A DNA stretch of 63,919 nt, filler included, from Octopus bimaculoides (lineage: Eukaryota), in the NCBI RefSeq assembly GCF_001194135.2. It is 7 parts of 7 records of this genome, joined end to end, with 100 filler letters (N's around TTAATTAATTAA, not from the genome) between each part and the next. Parts side by side here need not be neighbours in the genome. Positions count along the whole stretch, not along the records: positions 29,067 to 52,721 come from NC_069010.1; 6 more parts are not named here. The stretch is one strand, 5' to 3'. Shown piece after piece: positions 486 to 52,721 of the stretch. Each line of letters starts with the position of its first letter. The stretch's first letter is position 1. The translations under genes were made by a program, and so were the position numbers. The notes beneath the pieces were generated by a model. That model was given only the letters and a program-made list of their open reading frames with translations. It was not told where the DNA came from and ran no database searches.

Positions 486-1342
486 AAATGGGGAAAATGT
501 GAAGGAAATGAAATAAAGGACTGAAAATATAAAGAAATTAAGAAAAAGGAAACATAAAAGTTCATGTTTCAACTTTCCGATAGTGTAGATGCTAGTCCAT
601 AAGTCTTTAGGTACAATCTTATGTAAATCCAGATATGATTAGAGACTTCATAGTGTAAATATCCAGAGAGAAATGCCAGACCATATCAATGGTTCATAAG
701 AGAATAATAGCAGAAGTGGCTATTGAGAGATAAAGAGAAGAAAAATAAATAGGAGAGAGAGGAATTTGTAGGGAAGCTGGAGATACAGAGGAAGTGGCAA
801 GGATTGGTAGGAAGAATAAAATAATATAAAAGTATAGTGTACAAAAATAAACAAGAAGATAAAGAAGTATACATGGGTAAATAATGAGAGAGGAGGAAGG
901 TAAAGGAAGATACAAAATACAAAAAGTAAAATAAAATGAAAGGGATTCAAAGAGAAGAGGATATAAAGAGGATAGTAGATGCCAGTGCTGTTCTTCAAGT
1001 TTTTAGGGTTGGAGCAGGAAGTCAAGTAGTAAGTGTTTGTGTCCCTTTTATGGCTAAGGTCAGTAGCTATAGAAATATTTCTATCTATGGGGGTATGAGT
1101 CTCATAAAGGGTGAATGTGAAGTAGGTGTGAATGGAGAAACCACTTAAATGTTAAATTAGTATTATTATTATTGTAAATTATTTAGGAATTATTTAGGTT
1201 ACAACTAAGGATTAAGGGAAGTATGAGTTTAAGGTTTAAAGATAAATTAAAGAATTAACAGTTATCTTCTAAGGTACTTAAGGTTGATAGAAAAGATATA
1301 CAAGAGTATATAATAACAACCATGGAAGTATGTATGTAAGTG

Positions 1343-1876
1343 TTATGTGTGGGGGGTAAGTTTACACTTGGATTTATGGAAGAAGTTGTGTTTACATGTT
1401 GTAAAGGCTGTATTGTGTTTGTTGAGTAATTGTGGTGAGTTATGGGTTAAAATTTTCAGGGATTCTTTTAGGTAGAGTCTACAAGTGGAGTGCTGGCCCT
1501 GATATAGGATGCCAGAATCTATTGTAACCCAGGATAACCTATATTGTATTTTTCTATTAATTAGATGGTGTACGTACCTGGCTAAGTATGTGGAATTGCT
1601 ATGCTCTTTATATTTGAATGAGTTTAAATGTGCAGAATATTTTTGTATAAAATTCATGGTTGATCCAATATAGTAGCTATTGAAGTTATTTGATATGTTG
1701 TGGATGATGCATTGGTATATCACATTGAATCTTCTGCATTGGGATTGCAGTAGGCAGTCAGTCCCAGAACTGCAGTTGCAATTATCTGTTCTAAGATGGT
1801 TAGTTGTAGAGAGGGATGAAGTAGTGCTACTTGCAGACAAGTTAAAGGCTAGGGTTGTATTAGGTGATTGGTTCAT
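1343..1876 (-). pseudogene. GIY-YIG endonuclease domain of the Penelope-like element
   Basis: Translation CNCSSGTDC..C..NVIYQC..YYIGST..AHLNSF..STYLARYVHHL..SWVTI..CRLYLKE..LLNKH..CKH matches the Penelope-type GIY-YIG layout. Confidence 0.9.
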
Positions 1877-1879
1877 GTT

Positions 1880-2200
1880 ATTATCATTGCCATTATTGTT
1901 ATTATCATTATCACCGCCACCATTACCATTATTATTGTTATCGCTATTATAATTATTATTACTATTAGTAGTAGAAGAAGTGTTAGTATTAGCAGTGGTA
2001 TTGGTATTAGTATTATTATTATTGTAACTATTAGTAGTAGCAATTGTGGTAATAGTGTTAGTAATAGTATTATTTTCAGTAATGGTAATATCTTCATTGG
2101 TGGTAATTGCTAATACTATTAGTAATTGTAGTAGAAGTATTAGTGGTTGTAGTGGTTATAGTAGAGTTAGTATTGTTTGTATCAGTGTTCTTATTAGTAC
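1880..2200. repeat. Degenerate (ATT/AGT)n microsatellite in the RT-endonuclease linker
   Basis: Long imperfect trinucleotide run; it explains the Ile/Leu/Val-rich spurious ORFs here. Confidence 0.85.
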
Positions 2201-2399
2201 TACCATTGGTTTCAACTGTGCGCCCAGCTCTCTCAGAGGCAGGGATTATATTACCTAGATTTAAGTTATTTAAATTGTTAGGGTCAGGGGTGTTGCTTAT
2301 GCTATTGCAAGCGGTGTTAGTGTTTACGTTGTATAGATCTATGGTAGGGTTGTATGCATTTAGATAGTAAGAGCTAAGTTTACATTTGTTAGATGAGGT

Positions 2400-3845
2400 G
2401 ATAATAGATTCTATATTTGGTGTAGAGGAATAGGATAATTTTAAAGTGGATCTGTTAAAGACAGAATGGTATTTATGGTTACATGGGAAATTAGAGTCTA
2501 CTATTTTAAAGAATGCTTTAGCAAGGGCCTTAATGTTTAAAGTGAATGGAGGTGTGTACCAGAGAATTGATCTCTCACCACTTTTATTAGGTAAATTTGG
2601 GGAAGTGCATTTCCTGGTGTATGTTAGAGAGTTGCAGGGTTTGGTGTTAGTATTCTTAGATCAAGTATTATGCATGTGGGTGCTAGACAGGCAAGATTTA
2701 CTTACTATAGTGGGAGGGTGTGGGTATCCAATATGTGGGCATGCTCATCTAGGGTTAAATTTAGAGAGGTGTTCTTTAAGTTTAGAGTTGGTTATAAATC
2801 TAATCTTCTGAGAGGAACCACTAGTAGCTAGAGCTTGATTGTAGTAGGTGGCATAGTTATTGAAGATTTCCTGGGTGCTGGATAGATCGGATATCTTGAT
2901 GGATATGCCTTTGATTATACTCTCAAATGTAGATTTATGGTGGCTAGATTCTGTGTTGATGTACTTAAGGTATTGATTGGGTTTATGTTATGGGAAGTAA
3001 AGAGTTTAAATCCAAGGTAACATCTAGGAAGTTTGCTGTTTTGTAAGAGTTTTCAAAAGAGATAGATAGGTTAAAGATGGCAAAGAATTTATGTAAGAGT
3101 TTTCTAGTTTCTTCTTATGCAGATTTTGTTAGGCCTGTTGCAATTAACAATGCATCATCTCTATATAAACTTCTTTTGATGTTAGGGAAGTGTGTGTGGA
3201 GCTGTTGAAGGAGGTACAGTCTGGCTAGATCCGTGACCTGAGCAGAGTTGGGTGGGTCCATGGTTATATCAAAGAAATTTCTATTAGTATTGTGGCTAGC
3301 ATGGAACCAAAGCTTATTGTCGAAGGATATGAGTCTGCCTGGCAGATAGAATTACATCTATTTCTAAGGTTAGGTTGGTTAGATTTTTAGCTAGAGTCAA
3401 GGTGTCTTTAAGGAGGATTGGTGATATGGAGTTACTGATGTTGAATTGTAGGAATGAGGTGGTGTTCTTGTTTTGAAGCAAGTGGAACCATGTGATGACC
3501 TCACCTGTGCAGGACCATAAGCTTACATTTAGTTTCTTTCTAATAGTAGGTATAATTCTATCTAGTATATTTTTACTGATTCATCCTAAATGAGTCTTAT
3601 AGAGGGTTTTGGTTAAGAAGCCTGGTCCTTACGGTTAAAGTGTAGGGCTCTTGAGTTGTAGTGCTCCATGTGGTCGTCAATCTCGAGCGTGTTTACAAGC
3701 TTGCATTGATTAGTGTTGATGGTATCCAGGGCTGACTGCGGGGCTATCCTATAGGATTTGTGTAGCTCCTTAATAAATCCAGTGCATTCTTTGATGGTAA
3801 GAGAGTATAGATTTCCAGTTTTGTCAGAGAAGACATGCATTTTGA
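2400..3845 (-). pseudogene. Penelope-type reverse transcriptase, broken by stops and frameshifts
   Basis: Minus-strand fragments VFSDKTGNLY..KDQ (3613-3840), SLYRDDAL (YRDD at 3154-3165), FLDVTLD..HKPNQYLKYINTES, LWYTPPF, FPCNHKYHSVFNRSTLKLSYS. Confidence 0.88.
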
Positions 3846-4220
3846 GTGAATTTTTATGTTTCTTTTTTCTTTACTTCTTTATTTCTCTAGTCCTTTATTT
3901 TATTGTTTCCTTAACCCATTACCTCCCATAATTCTATTAACTGGAATTTTTTTATGAAACTTTGATTTCTAGCATAAAACAGCCTTAGAAACACGCTGGA
4001 ATGATCAAAATAACATTTCAAAATAACATTTTAAATAGAGATAAGCGAGATATTGGGTGAAATATTAGCAAACCTCATTTGAATATCAGAGAAATATACC
4101 TAGTAGATATAGCAAAAAGGTTAGATATGTGTAAATATTCACAGATAATTACGAAATTTGTAATTTTTAAGTGATCTCATATGAGATCACTGGTAGGTAA
4201 TGGGTTAATCTATACCCTTT

Positions 4221-4354
4221 ACATTTTCCCTATTTGTCTGTGATGGCAGGATTTCCCATATTTTGAGATATCCTAGCTGTAAGACTTTAAATTTTTTAAT
4301 AATAATAATGTATATGGCTTGAGATGTTTGTCTTGCCTTAGTGATTGTTGTCCT
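4221..4354 (+). repeat. Inverted, degenerate copy of the Penelope terminal repeat with a dead hammerhead core
   Basis: Aligns to the reverse complement of 372-500; the core reads GTGATGG and the GAAAC segment is deleted (4236-4285). Confidence 0.85.
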
Positions 4355-4934
4355 TTTTAACAAATATCTTAATTCCTTTCTCTAATTCTTTTTTCTCCCC
4401 TTCTGCCCCTTCCATTTTTTCTCTCTCATCCTTTCTCTAATTCTTTTTTCTCCCCTTCACAGTTTTCTATTTGTCTCTCTCTCTCTCCCCCCTTTTCTTC
4501 CTTTACTCTCTCGTTGCTCACACGTGACCATCGTCCATCTATCTTTTCTTCACGTGATCATCTTTCTCTTCCTTCAGTCTGTTGCACAGACCAGACGCAT
4601 TCTTATCTGTCTCCTACCTTTTCTTTTGTCAAAGAATATTCCTCCAGCGTTTGCTACCTTACCTCGTCTGGCCTAACGGCCCTCCATGTTTCTTTTCATT
4701 TGGTTTGTTGTATGTCTCCACTGTCCTGTTTTTGTTACCAACTTTGACCCTCTTCAAATGCTAAATTTTACTTTGGTTCATGGAAGCAACTGTTTTTTGA
4801 AGCCTCATGTTGTTAATTGCTCGAAATGTGGAGTAGATGAACTGATAAAGGGTCGTTCTTTATGTTACTTGTCTTGTTTTCCATTTGTTTCTCTCATTCG
4901 CATACCCAAAGTAATGATAGATATATACAATTAG

Positions 4935-5875
4935 ATGAACTGAGGTGGGAGTAAAAGTAATAAAAGTCATTATTCTGAATTGTTAAAGAGAAAGTAGAGC
5001 ATGCGCTAGGGTGGGTGGTGAAGTAAGTGAATGGTTTGATGTGAAGGTAGAGTAAAGACAGGGTTGTGTGATGTCTCCATAGCTGTTTAATCTCTATATG
5101 GATGGTCTGGTGAGAGAGGTGAATGATAGAACCTTTGGTAGGGGAGGTCAAATGGTGGGAGAAAATGGAGAGAAATGGCAGGTGAGTCAGTTGTTGTTTG
5201 CTTATGATACAGCACTGGTGGTGGATTTGGAAGAGCAACTTAGGAAACTGGTGGTAGAGTTTGGAAGAGTGTGTGAGTGGAGGAAACTGAAAGTGAATGT
5301 AACTAAGATTAAGGTGATGAGATGTTCAAGAGATGGAATGGCTGGTAGGATGGATGTGAGTATAAATGAGATGTTAGAGGAGGTGTGTGTTTTTAAATAT
5401 CTGGGATCATGTGATAGCGGATGGGAGGTTAGCTGAGGAAGTGGGAGGGGAGTAAAATACTTGGAGTCGTGAAAGATATGCTGAGAGATAAAAGGTTGAG
5501 TATGACAGTGAAAAGAGGTGTGTATAAGGGCATGATTGTACCAACAATGTTATATGGTGCAGAGACGTGGAGTCTGAGAGAGGCGGATAGGAGGCAACTA
5601 GATGCATTTGAAATGAGATGTTTGAGAGCCATGGTTGGTGTGACACGGATGGACAGGATGAGGAATGAAGAGATGTGAAAGCGAGCAGGAATGAAAAAAA
5701 ATTTATGTACCAGAATGGATAGATGACTGTTGAGGTGGTTTGGCCACATGGAGAGGATGGATGAGGAGCAGATAGTAAAGAGGGTGATGAAGGCAGAAAT
5801 GATAGGCAGCAGAACCAGAGGCAGACCTCAATTTGTGTGGATGGATGGAGTGAAGAAAGCTTTGGTTTTGCATTA
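4935..5875 (+). mobile_element. RTE-clade LINE fragment (RT C-terminal half)
   Basis: Remnants RQGCVMSP.LFNLYMDG, QLLFAYDTALV (FADD-like), FKYLGS, PTMLYGAETW, LRWFGH, GRPQFVWMDGVK. Confidence 0.88.
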
Positions 5876-6042
5876 GTTTTGGAATGCCAACATGATTTTA
5901 GAAACTGTATCTCTCAAGACATTAATTCAGTAGTTGTAATAACTGAAACTCTAGCCATCTGCACCCCAACAATTTTTTGCCTTTGCAAATGTATATGGCT
6001 TGAGATGTTTGTCTTGCCTTAGTGATTGTTGTCCTCTTTAAA

Positions 6043-6350
6043 TCATCATGCTGGCATGGGTTGGACAGTTCGACTGGGGTCTGGGAAGCCAGGAGGCTGC
6101 ACTAGGCCCCAATCTGATCAGGCAGTGTTTCTACAGCTGGATGCCCTTCCTAATGCCAACCACTCCGAGAGTGTAGTGGGTGCTTTTTATGTGCCACCGG
6201 CACAGGGGCCAGAGGAGCTGGCATCGACCACAATCGGATGGTACCTTTTACGTGCCACTGGCACAGAAGCCAGTAAACGCGGCACTGGCATCGGCCACAT
6301 TCGGATGGTGCTTTTTACATGCTACCGGCACAGGGCTCACAACTACAATT
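6043..6350 (-). mobile_element. RTE-tail non-autonomous element (SINE-like); other copies ~19755-19968(+), 21610-21800, 29655-30040, 32650-32742(+), 33240-33358(+), 42905-43010, 43915-44160
   Basis: Shared block catgctggcatgggttggac..ctggatgcccttcctaa(c/t)gccaaccac, usually next to a (CAT)n/(GAT)n tail; same sequence as the LINE 3' end at 6808-7000. Confidence 0.8.
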
Positions 6351-6807
6351 TCCATTTGATTTGATTTTGATATTGCTGATGTTGATGTGCTTGACTCAAT
6401 ATGTCTCCTCAAGCATGGCATGTTGCCCTACGATCCAAGGTACTTTTGAGTGGGCTGGTTATGTGACACTGGTGTAGATTACAGCTGTGGATTCACTTTA
6501 AATATAGATGTCTATTACAATAGAAAATAGAGGGTTATATAATGAAGTACAATGCATATGAATTCATATATATATACCAACTAGAACAGTTTTGAATTTG
6601 TCATATTGCCAATTGAAAAAAGTAGGTAAATATAAAGTGGTATTTCTAATGTTTTATCTAGCTGCTTCACACAGATGTGTGTGTATATGTGTGTGTATCT
6701 GTGTAACATATATCTCAGCATTATAGTCAACCGTTACAAAGGTAATAGAGATGCCTTTGATAGAATTACAGAAATATCAAACTGCTAGACCAGGTCATGA
6801 AAGTTAC

Positions 6808-34147: not shown

Positions 34148-37100
34148 ATGAGAAGCACTCTTGTCGACCCACGCGCATTCAAGTGTCCGCACTGCAGCAA
34201 AAGCTTTCACTGCTCCAGTCACTTGACCACCCATGTGAGGACGCACACCGGTGAGAGACCTTACAAGTGCGGCCAGTGTCCGAAGTCGTTTGCGCTACTT
34301 GGCAACCTGACGGCGCACGTGCGCACCCACACGGGCGAAAAGCCGTACAGCTGTAAGTTCTGCACCAAGTCGTTCACGCAGTCGACCAACCTGAATGTCC
34401 ACATGCGGGTGCACACTGGAGAGCGGCCGTACAAGTGTGAGCGATGCCAAAAAGCCTTCAAGACAAGCGGTGCACTCAACGGCCATGTGAAGTCCTGCTA
34501 CAAGATTGTGCGACGGTTTGCAGCTCCTGTTTTACGACAGAATAACACCAGTGGTAGTGCACTTGGTGCATCTTATGCAGGGCGCTCAGCCACCACTTCC
34601 AGCATGGTTCGTAATACTGAGAAACTACTACCAGCTATGAGCATGCAACGTATTCTTCCTAGTGATTCATCATTGAAACCATCTGTGTCTGTTTCCAGTG
34701 AGACCAGTTCTAGTTCGTTATCATATAGCAACAGTAGCTTGTTTAATTACCGTAGGAGAAAGATCTCTGACATTATTGCCAAGAAGCGATTCGGTGGAGC
34801 ACCAACAGTGTCAATGTGTAAGCCTTTGAATGTTAGCTCTGTAACTCGAAATTGTGGTTCTACAAGCAATACTCAAGGTACTGCAGAAAACAAACCGTCT
34901 TGTGTGAACTTGAACACACTTAAGCAAGAAGCCACACCTAGTCTTACCCCTGTAAATGGTATTTTTGAAAGCCGCCAACATAGTAAGTCAGGATTCCCTA
35001 GAGAATCTCTCAAAGATGGCAGTAATATGGTGGCAGCAACAACAGCAGCTGTATCTTCTAAGTTATTGGAGAGGGAGATGATCTCTGAGGATCAAAACTT
35101 TAATATTTATGATGATATTCACAAGTCTACTTCTAATGAAACACAACAAACCCCTACAATCACTGCAGCCAACAGCTTTGAAGATAGCAAAGATTTCCTA
35201 GTTTCGCCAGCAGGTTTCTCGCAGCAACCTACCATCCATTCCAATGGGGACAGCCTTACAGTGGATTTCAATTCGCTGGTGTCTTTATCAGAGATTTCTC
35301 AAGACAAAATTGAGGATGTCTTTTATCAGCAGAGCCACAGACAAACGGGAGGCGCAGCAGCGCAGTTCAGCCAAAGTGGAATTGTCGATAGCCAGCCTCT
35401 TGAGTCGAAGTCAGCAGAAAGACATTTGCCAGAGAACGGTGGGGCATCTTGTCCTCAACAAGATAGGAGGAGCAGTGATGGGACTAACTATGGTACTGTT
35501 CCCAGAAATACACTATCCAGAAGCAATGCTCAGACTGGTCGTGAGAGGAACATCCCTTTGACCACACGATCACACCAGAAACTTCCAAGATCTACTCACA
35601 GTTCTGACAAACTTAACTTCTGTAGAATACAATCACCATTTCTTACAGATGCTATGGCACTGTCCAGTGACAGATCTGTTCCAAGTTTAGCTCATTCTTC
35701 ACCTGGCTCAGCTAATTCATGTCTGGCTTTTCTGGAAGTTTCTACTTACACCCAGATCTTTAAATGTAAACTTTGCAATTTGGTCTTTGAAACGAAAGAT
35801 GATTTTCTCCACCACACACCTCTCCACGAGGATGATGAGCTGCTTGTCTGCAAATTCTGTGAAATGGATTTTAAAACCCCCCTGGATCTTGTCCTTCATC
35901 AGAAAGACCACAATCTACCGGAACAGCTTTGTGAACTCTGCGACCAAATGGTTTTATCAACACGCTTCGCTGCTCACTTGAATCTACATGCAACTGCAAT
36001 GAAACGAACAGCACAAGAGACCAGAATTTTTTGGTGCCATTTCTGTGATAAATCTTTCATAGACCAATCATATCTTGATCTTCATTTGCGAGTGCACTCA
36101 ATACAGAAACCCTTGCATTTCAGCTCGTCTGAACAATTACAGTCGAAAACTCACCGTCAGCATAGGAAACCCCTTCATGAAAAACCCTTGAAATCTTTTA
36201 AGTGTCCGTATTGTCAGAAGAAATTCCATTATTCTAAAAACCTCATCGCACACATGCATTCCCATTCCGTTCAGCGTTTATACAAGTGTAAGAAATGTTC
36301 AAGAGTCCTTAGAACTGTCCAACGTTTTAATATTCATCAGAAAATCTGTCCAAAGAAATATCGGCACCATTCCAAGAAAACTGCACCATTTAGTCTCTCA
36401 AAAATAACATCATGGCAAAACAGTTGCAGCAATGATGGTACCAACAACCACCTTCCAGAACATTCCATCAGAAATAGTACTGCTGTAGTTTTTAAGCAAA
36501 ATATAACCGAAAACATGGAAGTGTCTCAAAGCCCTGATTCTGTGATAGGAGATAAACTAGAGAGTGTAGAATGCTTTCAGGAGAATACACAGGTTCCATG
36601 TGCTGATGATGGCACTGACAATGGTCTGCAAAACACTGACGATGTCCAGTCACCTTTGCAGGAGTTTGTTGAAGGTCAGGTGGTGAAAGAAAGAGATGTT
36701 GACCAAAGTGTCAATTCAGACAAAGTGTTGTTGAGGTGTTTATGTTGTCAGATGAATTTCTCATCTAAGTTGTTGCTCTTACAACACATCAGCAGCCAGC
36801 ACAGCTCAGAGGACCAATGTCAGTCCTGTGGAACCCCTTTGGATGTTGATAATGAGCTGGTTAGTCATATTAACTGCTACACCACTTCGACAAGCATTTA
36901 CAGAAACTGCAGATACTGTCCAGAAGTGTTTTCTGATAATGGTAGTTTCCAAAGTCATTTGGCTGCTGTACACAAAATGCACACTGATGCCCAAGAACAC
37001 GATGATGAAGTTGTAGATGTTGACCCCTCCAGTGAAGAAGTTACTAGTGTTGACCTCGAAAGTGCTCCCAGTTCAGGGATCGGTTTTGTAAACTGCATTG

Positions 37101-39584
37101 ACCAGGCAAAACAATCAAGAAAACAGCACCCTGTATTTCCACGTGCGCAAGTGCACTTCCAGCCGCGTAACAAGTGTCATAACTGCGGTCGCACTTTCTC
37201 TTCAACATCTCAGCTGTATGTTCATCTTGTTAAAGCCCACGATCGTTTACAACCACACCGATGCCATTACTGCAAAAGACTTTTCAAAAACTGCACAAAT
37301 TTTTACATGCACGTCTGCTCACATGCTCCTAAAGAGAGTTTGTATGAGTGCAAGTTGTGTTGCAAGGGTTTTACGCAGCCCGAGAATCTCAGAACACATC
37401 TTCAAACGCATAGCAGTGACAGACCGTTCCGGTGTAAATTCTGCGGCAAGTTTTTCAGTAAGCCTGATAACTTGAATGCACATCTGCGAGTGCACACCAA
37501 CGAGAGACCATTTCTGTGTCATCACTGCAACTCTGCATTTAAAACAACTGCTGCACGCAACGTGCACATTCAGAACTGCACCGTGAAAAGGTTGAAGAAA
37601 AAAGCTGTTTCTCATTCTATGGATTATAGTGTCCAAGAGATGAAAGCACTGACTTCACAGTTCACTGGTTCTCAGTCGGAGTTAACCAACGATACTATTG
37701 AGGTACCGGTTATTGCAGCTGTAAAAGACAATTCTCCTGAAACATTACCAATTATAGAAAATAAAAAAGAATCTTTGAGATCAGTTCCTGCAAATAAATG
37801 TACGGAAGAACAATTAGAAAGATCTCCCACAATGCAACACAATTTAATCTCCAACCACCAGCAAGAATTACATACAGTCGACATGAAACCAACGCCAACA
37901 GAGCTTTGCAATGATAGCTCTCTGCCGACCATACAAGGGTTTTACCAAAATAAATTCTGTACCGACAATTTATCGATGTCAAATTCTTCCAAATCTTTGA
38001 ATTATTCAACATCTTCACCCAACAACATTAATAGTTCTGAGTCGAAAGACATGATTCCTACAAGCGAGACTGGTAGTAGTAGTAGTAGTAGTAATTATTC
38101 CACTGTTGCATCTGAGAAGTCTGTGAGTCATTTGGAGGCAGAGCCTGAAAGTTCGGATGAACCTAAGAACATTTCACTTGGGTTTGATCCCACGACCAAG
38201 TTAGACGACAGATCTTATCTCACCTCAAATGAGAATAAACTTCCATTGCTGGAGAGCGATGGCAGTTTCTTTAACAAGAGGGTGGAGTCGGAAACTAAAG
38301 ACTCTAGACAAGATCCTTGTCATTATAAAATAATTAACGATTTACCAAAGTCTGAGGAGGTAGGAAGTTCACTGGGACTTTANNNNNNNNNNNNNNNNNN
38401 NNNNNNNNNNNNNNNNNNNNNNNNNNNNNNNNNNNNNNNNNNNNNNNNNNNNNNNNNNNNNNNNNNNNNNNNNNNNNNNNNNNNNNNNNNNNNNNNNNNN
38501 NNNNNNNNNNNNNNNNNNNNNNNNNNNNNNNNNNNNNNNNNNNNNNNNNNNNNNNNNNNNNNNNNNNNNNNNNNNNNNNNNNNNNNNNNNNNNNNNNNNN
38601 NNNNNNNNNNNNNNNNNNNNNNNNNNNNNNNNNNNNNNNNNNNNNNNNNNNNNNNNNNNNNNNNNNNNNNNNNNNNNNNNNNNNNNNNNNNNNNNNNNNN
38701 NNNNNNNNNNNNNNNNNNNNNNNNNNNNNNNNNNNNNNNNNNNNNNNNNNNNNNNNNNNNNNNNNNNNNNNNNNNNNNNNNNNNNNNNNNNNNNNNNNNN
38801 NNNNNNNNNNNNNNNNNNNNNNNNNNNNNNNNNNNNNNNNNNNNNNNNNNNNNNNNNNNNNNNNNNNNNNNNNNNNNNNNNNNNNNNNNNNNNNNNNNNN
38901 NNNNNNNNNNNNAGTAGTAGTAGTAGTAGTCTTCGTCCTGGCCTGTCAGGTCCTCAGTCCATGCTGTATTCACTACAGCAGCAGCAGCAGCCACCGCCGG
39001 TTCTTGAACAGAACTCCCAAACCCCTGATGATTCCAAGACACAACTCATCAAGTGCAAACAATGTCCAAAGAAATTCACAAAAATCTACAGCCTTGCCGT
39101 CCACATGAAATCTCATTATCAACAACAGCAACAACAACATCTAAAGCAACAACTACAACAACACCAACACGTCTGCAAAATCTGTCCCGGTACGGAAGTG
39201 TTCCCGACTGCTGAGGACCTCAGTGAACATTTAAAGCACCATTGCGAGTTTCGCTGCAAGTTCTGTCAGAAGGTGGTGCACAGTGCATCACAGCTGTACA
39301 CGCATATGAGGACGCACACCGGTGAAAAGCCGTTCCATTGTCCGCATTGCCCGAAGACATTCGCTGTGAACTGCAACCTCATTGCCCACGTGCGCATCCA
39401 CACGGGGGAGCGCCCGTTCCGGTGCCAGTATTGCGACAAGTCGTTTGCCCAGGCGACCAACCTCAACGTGCATACGCGCATACACACAGGCGAACGGCCG
39501 TACCTGTGCAGCAAATGCAAGAGGGCCTTCCGCACATCTAGTGCCCTCAAGGGTCACCTCAAGTGCTGCCCGGTCCCAATATAA
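34148..39584 (+). CDS. Large multi-cluster C2H2/C2HC zinc-finger protein (~24 fingers), apparently one exon, interrupted by N-gap 38383-38912
   Basis: Open from ATG 34148 to the gap with 18 finger motifs and TGE(K/R)P linkers. After the gap an open frame ([10 protein letters not shown]..) carries 6 more fingers to TAA at 39582-39584. Frames differ by 1-2 nt, within gap-size error; two separate genes cannot be excluded. Confidence 0.9.
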
Positions 39585-47243: not shown

Positions 47244-47376
47244 AACACTGAAGACCTTGCAAAGAAACAGTACACATTACAGCTGAACCTTGGTGCTGAA
47301 TTGCAAGTCTACTGTGGTTATAAATCTGCGAAATACATCCAGACTGATAAAAATATATACAAGCCAGGAGATACAG
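47244..47376 (+). CDS. TEP gene exon (MG1/MG2 boundary)
   Basis: ctgttgtag acceptor, gtaaca donor; NTEDLAKKQYTLQLNLGAELQVYCGYKSAKYIQTDKNIYKPGDT(V) contains the family signature IQTDKxIYKPGxTV. Confidence 0.92.
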
Positions 47377-47499
47377 GTAACACATCTTACATCACTACAT
47401 CCACCCGTCCAGCTGCACCCACTATTTCTGGGAGGTAGTTTAGAGGCAGAGTCCCCAAGCACTCCCATCATCACATCCTATCATAAGCAACCATCAAGT

Positions 47500-47695
47500 A
47501 TGCTTGAATGGAACCAAACGGTCAACGTGGAACTCTGTGTTCAACAGATGGAACCACTCAGCACGGCTATTCAAGGGAAAAGACCTAATCGGGAGCGTGG
47601 AGTTCTTCTGCCGCACAACAATGCCTGCCCTCATATCACCAATATGACCAAGGAAGCCATTCAAACGCATGTTTGAATTATGTTACACACCCTGT
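47500..47695 (+). mobile_element. Mariner transposase catalytic-domain fragment (intronic)
   Basis: Reads NQTVNVELCVQQMEPL..AIQGKRPNRERGVLLPHNNACPHITNMTKEAIQ, a decayed LLHDNARPH motif. Confidence 0.8.
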
Positions 47696-49129: not shown

Positions 49130-49620
49130 CCACTACCACTACAATCACCACCGTCCCAACTATTACCACCCCCAACTACCGCTAACACCAATACCACTAC
49201 CACCATCACAACTACTAAAACCACCACCACTACCACCACAACCACCTTCGCTATTATCATCTCCACGACTACCACTACTACTACCACTACCACCATCACA
49301 ACTACTAAAACCACCACCACTACCACCACCACCACCTTCGCTATTATCATCTCCATGACTACCACTAACACCACTACTACTACCACTACCACCATCACAG
49401 CTACTAAAATCACCACCACTACCACCACAACCACCTTCGCTATTATCATCTCCACGACTACCACTAACACCACTACTACTACCACTACCACCATCACAGC
49501 TACTAAAACCACCACCACTACCACTACAACCACCTTCGCTATTATCATCTCCACGACTACCACTAACACAACTAGCAACACCACTACTACTACCACTGCC
49601 ACCACCACCACCACCACCAT
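49130..49620. repeat. Minisatellite built from ACC/ACT triplets (unit 90-99 bp, four anchors)
   Basis: Anchor cgctattatcatctcc at 49249, 49339, 49438, 49537. Confidence 0.88.
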
Positions 49621-52181: not shown

Positions 52182-52304
52182 GTGAGTAAATTTTTGTTTT
52201 TTTATGGAGATCAACATATTTAAATTGGTTGTTTTTGTTGTAGTATTTTAAACAAATCATTCGTTAAGATAAGCTTTGCATTTATTTTCAATGATATTGG
52301 TTAA

Positions 52305-52721
52305 GTGTTTTTCTTTTATTTATTGGTGAAATAAATATTTTTATATAAATCCATTTAATATTTCTGTTAGTTTATATTCTAATAAACATAAAGTTAATAA
52401 TATCACGTTTATAATTTTAGTTTAACCTAAAACTTCGATAAGATAAGAATTACATTTATTTTTAATAATATTGTTAAACCTTTTTCTTTTATTTATTGGT
52501 AAAATAAGTATTTTTATAGAAATTCATTTGTTATATATTGTTAGCTGATATTCTAATAAACGATATGTTAATAGTATAACGTTTAATTGTAGTTTAAACT
52601 AAAGCTTCGATGAGTATAATACCGTTAAATATTTTTCTTTTATTTATTAGTAGTAAAATACGTCCTTTTGTTTTTTGATATAATAAGTATTTTTATATAA
52701 ATTCATTTGTTATTTATTCTT
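52305..52721. repeat. AT-rich tandem repeat (~150-175-bp unit, about 2.5 copies) running into a gap
   Basis: ttttcttttatttatt(g/a)gt recurs near 52309, 52481 and 52631 with conserved downstream blocks. Confidence 0.75.

Follow-up and report, generated by a model that had tools for sequence, protein, structure and literature searches.

The locus at positions 34148-39584 of the window (the whole stretch of 63,919 nucleotides of Octopus bimaculoides DNA that was analysed) carries two look-alike zinc-finger arrays on either side of an assembly gap. The question is whether both belong to one gene and, if so, how their likeness arose and how the arrays might act. The locus is one conserved cephalopod gene, and its product is a C2H2 zinc-finger protein some 1650-1900 residues long. 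All coding features of the gene lie on the plus strand. Translation starts at ATG 34148, with an in-frame stop and no earlier ATG upstream, and this start is aligned with the start codon of the orthologue, which also has in-frame stops upstream. From this first ATG, 1411 codons plus 2 bases (34148..38382) are open to the edge of a gap of 530 N (38383..38912), after which 223 codons (38913..39584) are open from the opposite edge to the stop at 39582-39584. The gap probably lies inside a fast-evolving Ser/Gln-rich linker. A single ORF spanning 34148-38917 was discarded as an artefact of N being translated as X, and a spurious gap with overlapping flanks was ruled out since the flanks do not overlap. 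The octopus protein is present in UniProt as a truncated model (A0A0L8H7Q6) without its first 502 residues, and the gene structure given here corrects this public model, whose missing residues include one of the two domains that are conserved best.

The reading frames before and after the gap have to be reconciled. As written, they are one base apart, so that the fingers after the gap are in a different frame from those before it; a continuous ORF requires the gap to measure 1 mod 3, whereas the written 530 is 2 mod 3. This offset would fit two tandem genes, with a stop and a new start within the gap and the C-terminal six fingers forming a separate 207-aa protein from the ATG at 38961, a codon separated from the gap edge by 16 open codons. 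However, the written gap length is only an estimate, and both frames are open up to their respective gap edges. Indeed, the post-gap region begins at the very edge with (AGT)6, i.e., Ser6, and the pre-gap frame encodes poly-Ser by the same codon repeat. Moreover, the gene has a full-length orthologue in a deeply diverged species (P0009/L001, SRR29271462), which is colinear with it from finger 1 to the final finger and carries everything in a single ORF of 1892 codons on a contig of 6526 nt. Because this ORF is uninterrupted, lies on one contig and is colinear with the octopus locus, one gene and not two is concluded. The continuity across the gap assumed in the sequence-only reading is hence supported, indirectly, and the two-gene alternative is very improbable.

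The likeness of the gene to other proteins was explored by several searches. Because the exhaustive HMMER search ranks proteins by summed finger score, the count of two true relatives holds among the 150 best matches listed. Word-indexed protein searches gave no match for the linker before the gap or for cluster 2, and only generic poly-zinc-finger proteins when the C-terminal fragment was used as query. PDB sequence searches with the N-terminal array, cluster 2 and the cap finger returned generic finger arrays only (ZNF568, PRDM9, CTCF and ZBTB proteins), and no match was obtained from a literature search on the helix motifs of the arrays.

Fingers were scanned with the strict pattern C-x2-C-x12-H-x3-4-[HC], which gave 21 fingers, 16 of them on the near side of the gap and 5 beyond it. 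Three degenerate fingers were added by a relaxed scan (35924-35989, 36812-36877 and 39168-39245), leading to 24 in total. The 21 strict and 3 degenerate fingers display the Krueppel-type C2H2 ligand spacing, C-x2-4-C-x12-H-x3-5-H, together with the conserved hydrophobic residues. In line with this, Pfam PF00096 (zf-C2H2) was matched with 141.8 and 89.8 bits against a gathering cut-off of 25.2, and all Pfam matches were to zinc-finger families.

The fingers are gathered in clusters, which are separated by long Ser/Thr/Asn/Gln-rich linkers evolving almost freely. The N-terminal four-finger cassette, N4 (fingers 1-4, 34178..34498, residues 11-117), starts at residue 11 and ends in a C2HC cap, HVKSC. 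Downstream come a conserved linker island, SLT[VI]DFNS (35252..35275), and cluster 2 (35759..36349), made of six atypical fingers, one of them degenerate and the last of C2HC type (HQKIC). Cluster 3a (36731..36973) consists of three divergent fingers, the middle one ending in H-x2-C in octopus vs HIDCC in the orthologue. In the middle block, finger 'a' (37088..37159) is a relic that has lost its zinc ligands in octopus and is intact in the orthologue (SCKVCSKQFTKLYSLAVHMRTHH), and finger 'b' (37169..37240) ends in H-x4-H. These are followed by M4 (37256..37579), a third cassette copy at the end of cluster 3, which is capped by HIQNC and is degenerate in octopus. A second conserved linker island, PTIQGFYxNxFCxD (37925..37966), precedes the C-terminal block, where fingers 'a' and 'b' (39048..39245; 'b' degenerate, with x14 spacing) are followed by the C-terminal four-finger cassette, C4 (fingers 21-24, 39249..39569), which is capped by HLKCC and ends 4 codons before the stop. 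The three linkers within N4, like the three within C4, are TGE[KR]P[YF], and those of octopus M4 are no longer TGEKP-like. As first described, each of the four clusters is closed by an H-x3-C finger, its last one. The cap cysteine is kept at 8/8 cluster ends of the two species compared, and a C2HC-only ligand set is found in 4/21 fingers here vs 22 of about 4906 in the background.

The sequence-only reading had aligned fingers 1-4 with fingers 21-24 finger for finger, and this alignment was recovered with 65/107 identical residues (61%), vs 49% when the arrays were shifted by one finger. The residues at helix positions -1/2/3/6 are also those reported, namely CSHT, LGNA, QTNV and TGAG in fingers 1-4 and SSQT, VCNA, QTNV and TSAG in fingers 21-24. 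Such likeness could in principle reflect a generic C2H2 consensus (the finger framework and the TGEKP linkers) or convergence, without any duplication. Indeed, generic arrays reach 53-60% identity to the cassettes: in a background of 282 other zinc-finger proteins, itself enriched for similarity and yielding 4366 in-register four-finger windows, identity peaked at 59.8% for the N-terminal array and at 53.3% for the C-terminal one. The N4-C4 identity exceeds this background by a real but narrow margin, finger 1 does not stand out, and the case for duplication is made by the orthologue and the tree, not by identity alone. Nevertheless, the match is best in register, fingers 2, 3 and 4 each pair with their counterparts as reciprocal best matches, and the helix-residue matches between N4 and C4 (17/28, vs a background maximum of 14-16/28) exceed those of all 4366 windows. 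The rare C2HC cap and the preceding 'a' and 'b' fingers are likewise common to the cassettes, the M and C blocks having the same six-finger layout, a-b-1-2-3-4cap. In the tree, N4, M4 and C4 were grouped in 81% of bootstraps when set against the most similar outside cassettes, and orthologous cassette pairs were recovered in 98-100%. An origin of the likeness in consensus or convergence is scarcely credible.

The proposed growth of the gene by duplication of a C2HC-capped cassette is therefore retained, with three copies (N4, M4 and C4) where two had been seen. The middle copy, rather than the C-terminal one, is probably the nearest paralogue of the N-terminal array, M4 taking this place in 60% of bootstraps and C4 in 28%. 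Identities amount to 61-65% between N4 and C4, 66-68% between N4 and the M4 of the other species, and 56% between M4 and C4, while octopus M4 is 42% identical to N4 and 50% identical to the orthologous M4. This third copy is well preserved in the other species and decayed in octopus. Intragenic duplication gave rise to the three cassettes before the two compared lineages separated. The saturation of synonymous sites (where the amino acid is the same, its codon is shared in only 0.3-0.5 of cases, and pS > 0.75 everywhere) places the triplication before this separation, and it also rules out recent gene conversion between cassettes. As an instance of a capped multi-finger cassette being duplicated within a gene, the locus is clean and datable.

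A comparison of evolutionary rates of the end arrays, which had been suggested as a check, was made between two species. With dN of 0.043 for N4 and 0.103 for C4, the end arrays are under far stronger constraint than any other part of the protein; dN is 0.35-0.38 in cluster 2 and in M4, and it reaches about 1.0 in the linkers. This is also illustrated by the identity between octopus and orthologue, which is 93% in N4 and 87% in C4, 57-67% in cluster 2 and 29% in cluster 3a. The specificity residues are identical in both species throughout the end arrays (16/16 in N4 and 16/16 in C4, i.e., 32/32). Members of a lineage-specific cephalopod C2H2 expansion would be recent paralogues, usually lying in tandem clusters and having no one-to-one orthologue in distant cephalopods. 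A link of the locus to the octopus C2H2 expansion is not supported by this two-species comparison: the gene is old and conserved, and it has a colinear orthologue and saturated synonymous sites. No other zinc-finger ORF was found in the 23.6-kb piece that carries it. In the same piece, an Rfam search gave no match, and a suspected mariner-like fragment (47290-47676) was rejected as having no Pfam support. That a single gene carries three ancient paralogous cassettes, of which the end arrays are its most constrained parts, is concluded with high confidence.

TGEKP-type linkers between adjacent fingers are a hallmark of DNA-reading arrays. Because N4 and C4 have kept such canonical linkers and invariant recognition residues, they would be working DNA-binding modules, and octopus M4 would be losing its DNA-binding features. 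According to the usual zinc-finger recognition rules, by rule of thumb, Asn(+3)/Gln(-1) selects an A-rich core; a site with such a core is predicted for the Asn(+3)/Gln(-1) residues common to fingers 2-3 of N4 and C4. The two arrays have 11/16 specificity residues in common. Because the other five are differences fixed in both species, the predicted specificities of the arrays are related and not identical. One of the five puts His vs Gln at +3 of finger 1, from which the two hands are expected to recognise related, non-identical sites. Given 5/16 residue differences, these sites may differ substantially. N4 and C4 would be joined by a flexible tether of about 1400-1700 residues and, by analogy with two-handed factors, the protein would most likely engage two such predicted sites together or choose between them. 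The C2HC finger would simply terminate each array and may also offer a surface for protein contact. Two-site binding is plausible, and the idea is not new, as ZEB and HIVEP/ZAS proteins provide precedents. The two-handed mechanism, as the conjectural part, is put forward tentatively, whereas the whole account of one gene, three ancient cassettes and this mechanism is regarded as rather probable.

Alternatively, the end arrays could be used independently, on different targets or in different isoforms, without bridging or looping, their paralogy then being history and not mechanism. The differences fixed at 5/16 specificity residues suggest that each array has been kept for its own site, and the number of hands would not be essential because octopus M4 is decaying. 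However, both arrays stand at the extreme ends of the polypeptide in both species and are its two most constrained segments, and the ZEB and ZAS precedents favour cooperative action; independent use appears unlikely, though it deserves consideration. That the arrays act chiefly on RNA or proteins instead of DNA could be suggested by weak Pfam matches to the zf-C2H2_jaz (dsRNA-binding) model and by the protein contacts that C2HC fingers mediate in FOG/U-shaped. Those matches fall in cluster 2, outside the end arrays, and both the canonical TGE[KR]P linkers and the polar residues at -1/3/6, typical of DNA-reading arrays, are present in N4 and C4, which makes such a role improbable.

The two-handed mechanism could be extended to that of a cephalopod-restricted, multi-handed architectural factor, with near-identical A/T-reading hands (two, or perhaps three in decapodiforms) bridging distant sites through a tether of 1400-1700 disordered residues. 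Insulator and architectural zinc-finger proteins of other animals act in looping or clustering, and a factor of this kind would contribute to chromatin looping or to the clustering of AT-rich elements. This extension is highly speculative and quite unlikely to be correct. In any case, an uncharacterised, strongly constrained candidate cephalopod transcription factor with two end arrays is nominated. It would represent no new class of mechanism, two-handed zinc-finger binding being already established for ZEB and ZAS.

Parts of this organization recall known systems. C2HC variant fingers occur at the ends of arrays in CTCF (finger 11) and Snail (last finger), and the CCHC fingers of FOG/U-shaped bind protein; the resemblance lies in a Cys in place of His as last zinc ligand of an otherwise classical finger. 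Repeated four-finger cassettes are found with long linkers in P0018 (Argonauta hians, 2394 aa) and P0299 (Sepia pharaonis), and many times along a huge protein in P0049 (2650 aa), while P0007 (thrips, named 'Xfin') has four cassettes, each ending in ...HVKIC. These are different genes, having no non-finger sequence in common with the octopus gene and cassettes falling outside the N4/M4/C4 group. ZAS/HIVEP/Schnurri proteins resemble the octopus protein in being very large and in having two far-apart paralogous finger modules. In PMC3048431 (citing Fan and Maniatis 1990), two widely separated finger pairs of ZAS proteins are described as binding the same consensus, and the ZAS domain as a finger pair with an acidic region plus one rich in Ser/Thr. 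In contrast, the octopus arrays have four fingers and a C2HC cap, and what follows N4 is basic or neutral with no acidic tract, unlike in a ZAS domain. In ZEB/deltaEF1/zfh-1 proteins, both clusters bind CACCT-type half-sites simultaneously. Descriptions of ZEB1/ZEB2/zfh-1 (the deltaEF1 family) likewise report related finger clusters near both ends, with similar half-sites and two sites engaged together. Unlike ZEB, which has a central homeodomain, the octopus protein and its full-length orthologue gave no homeobox family in Pfam, and the clusters have four fingers each instead of 4+3, with a third copy present as well as two more clusters of atypical fingers. The likeness described here is one of architecture: with related clusters, 61% identical, near both of its termini, the octopus protein comes nearest to ZEB in the way it is proposed to act.

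The locus encoding the octopus zinc-finger protein is split by an assembly gap (38383-38912, 530 N). On the plus strand, the pre-gap coding region is open throughout for 1411 codons, from an ATG at 34148, upstream of which an in-frame stop and no earlier ATG were found, to the gap at 38383. The post-gap region, in another frame, is open from its first base (38913) for 223 codons, up to the stop at 39582-39584. A single ORF covering 34148-38917 was rejected as an artefact of translating N as X, the post-gap DNA reading TAG TAG TAG in the pre-gap frame. Pfam matches in both parts were restricted to C2H2-type zinc-finger families. As two bases remain before the gap, the ORF could be continuous only if the gap were 1 mod 3 long, and 530 is 2 mod 3; because this length is only an estimate, it speaks neither for nor against continuity. 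Comparison of the gap flanks revealed no overlap. The post-gap sequence opens with (AGT)6 (38913-38930), encoding Ser6 in the finger frame, and an identical in-frame run occurs before the gap (38075-38092). A duplicated flank was ruled out, the sequences following the two runs being different. Because Ser6 is present on both sides, the gap probably lies within a low-complexity Ser/Gln-rich linker, and such repeats are the probable cause of the break in the assembly.

Independent evidence on continuity came from an exhaustive HMMER search for relatives, with octopus residues 1-1200 as query. It retrieved P0009, a full-length orthologue of 1892 residues whose ORF, at 675-6353 of a 6526-nt contig from run SRR29271462, is unbroken, its ATG being preceded by in-frame stops. 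P0009 shares 42% overall identity with the octopus protein and is colinear with it through the whole series of fingers; this colinearity takes in clusters 2 and 3, the C-terminal block and two short islands in the linkers. In that species, therefore, the arrays at the two ends are parts of a single protein, which makes it very unlikely that the octopus locus contains two genes. One gene across the gap, as proposed by the sequence-only reading, is thus strongly, if indirectly, indicated through the orthologue. The Octopus bimaculoides model A0A0L8H7Q6 (UniRef, 1103 aa) derives from the same locus, hence provides no independent evidence on this point. It begins at Met503 (nt 35654), leaving out the 502 N-terminal residues and with them the N-terminal array, the most conserved domain, and it crosses the gap via a predicted intron (...PKSEE|QQQQPPPV...; 38359-38980) that is probably a gap artefact.

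The octopus protein has 24 fingers (16 + 5 in a strict scan and three degenerate ones added by a relaxed scan) and P0009 has 25. The recognition residues of fingers 1-4 and 21-24 were exactly those listed earlier, and the reported finger-for-finger match between the N-terminal (N4, 34178-34498) and C-terminal (C4, 39249-39569) cassettes was recovered, with 65 of 107 positions identical in register vs 49% when shifted by one finger. In a background of 282 other zinc-finger proteins, which supplied 4366 four-finger windows compared in register, identity peaked at 59.8% to N4 and 53.3% to C4, and the best window shared 14-16 of 28 helix residues vs 17 of 28 between N4 and C4. This is a genuine but slight excess over generic similarity, and finger 1 alone is not distinctive. 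As also described, each of the four clusters is capped by an H-x3-C finger (HVKSC, HQKIC, HIQNC, HLKCC; HAKSC, HKRSC, HLRGC and HVKCC in P0009). Since no alternative histidine was found near the cap cysteine at the eight cluster ends of both species, this cysteine is conserved in 8/8. Such fingers are unusual: of about 4906 in the comparison set, 22 are C2HC-only.

Constraint is unevenly distributed. Between octopus and P0009, dN (Nei-Gojobori) was 0.043 for N4, 0.103 for C4, 0.18 for the two fingers preceding C4, 0.35 for cluster 2, 0.38 for M4, a third cassette copy, and about 1.0 for the linkers. Synonymous sites were saturated (pS > 0.75 in every region), indicating a deep split; the source lineage of P0009 is plausibly decapodiform. 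Specificity residues are identical between species in N4 (16/16) and C4 (16/16), while N4 and C4 differ at 5 of 16 positions, which implies that each end array was retained for a related specificity of its own. Ser/Thr/Asn/Gln/Pro/Gly make up 47% of the linkers, with N4 and C4 about 1400 residues apart in octopus (gap excluded) and 1671 in P0009. Two conserved islands in these otherwise unconstrained linkers, SLT[VI]DFNS (35252-35275) and PTIQGFYxNxFCxD (37925-37966), may be short linear interaction motifs.

M4 closes cluster 3 (37256-37579). Six fingers in the same arrangement make up both the M and the C block: an FTKxYSLAVHM finger, an odd finger and the four of the cassette. The P0009 M4 shows 66-68% identity to N4 and 56% to C4, and in this protein the first M-block finger and the M4 TGEKP-type linkers are intact. 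In octopus, M4 is only 42% identical to N4 and 50% to its orthologue, the TGEKP-type linkers are gone and the first finger is a relic (37088-37159) deprived of all zinc ligands; judging from its sequence, the middle block is decaying. In a neighbour-joining tree (200 bootstraps) including the most similar outside cassettes, N4, M4 and C4 grouped in 81% of replicates and orthologous pairs in 98-100%, N4 pairing with M4 (60%) more often than with C4 (28%). Hence, the results support the proposed duplication of a capped cassette and raise the number of copies to three. Codons for the same amino acid matched at only 0.3-0.5 in every comparison, so the copies are old and recent gene conversion is ruled out; from cephalopod relatives, the age of the triplication is a lower bound.

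The large octopus C2H2 expansion invoked earlier is documented (PMC12513265). At this locus, nothing ties the gene to it, given the old, colinear, strongly constrained orthologue pair and the lack of a second, neighbouring zinc-finger ORF within 29067-52721. This piece has seven internal gaps, most bordered by dinucleotide or trinucleotide microsatellites. Downstream of the gene, a 99-bp ACC-rich minisatellite has about 4.6 copies (49192-49619) and an AT-rich tandem repeat with a 174-bp unit has 2.7 (52243-52714). A mariner-type transposase remnant (47290-47676, ORF with ...PHNNACPH...) was unsupported, with no Pfam match.

N4 and C4 have canonical linkers and the polar -1/3/6 residues typical of DNA-reading arrays. 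Under the common recognition rules, adenine is preferred by both Asn (+3) and Gln (-1), and guanine by His (+3). By these rules, fingers 2-3 of all cassette copies would read an A-rich core, and finger 1 is predicted to differ in specificity (His in N4 vs Gln in C4). Joined by a long, flexible tether, the two related hands could engage two sites; such binding by the end arrays is a reasonable, precedented hypothesis, and the hands might act jointly, alternately or on non-DNA partners.

Related end hands fit the two-handed mode of ZEB/deltaEF1, as named in reference titles, and the two far-apart finger modules of ZAS/HIVEP that bind the same consensus (PMC3048431). Because neither the octopus protein nor P0009 had a homeodomain match in Pfam, and the octopus protein lacks a ZAS-type finger pair with acidic region, it is not a member of these families. 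Outside the window, giant zinc-finger proteins (P0018, P0299, P0116, P0049, P0007) repeat a multi-finger cassette between long linkers; among them are a second cephalopod family (Argonauta hians and Sepia pharaonis) and a thrips giant with four cassettes, each closing with a ...HVKIC C2HC finger. It is an architecture that recurs independently. The octopus gene is a further case of a known design.
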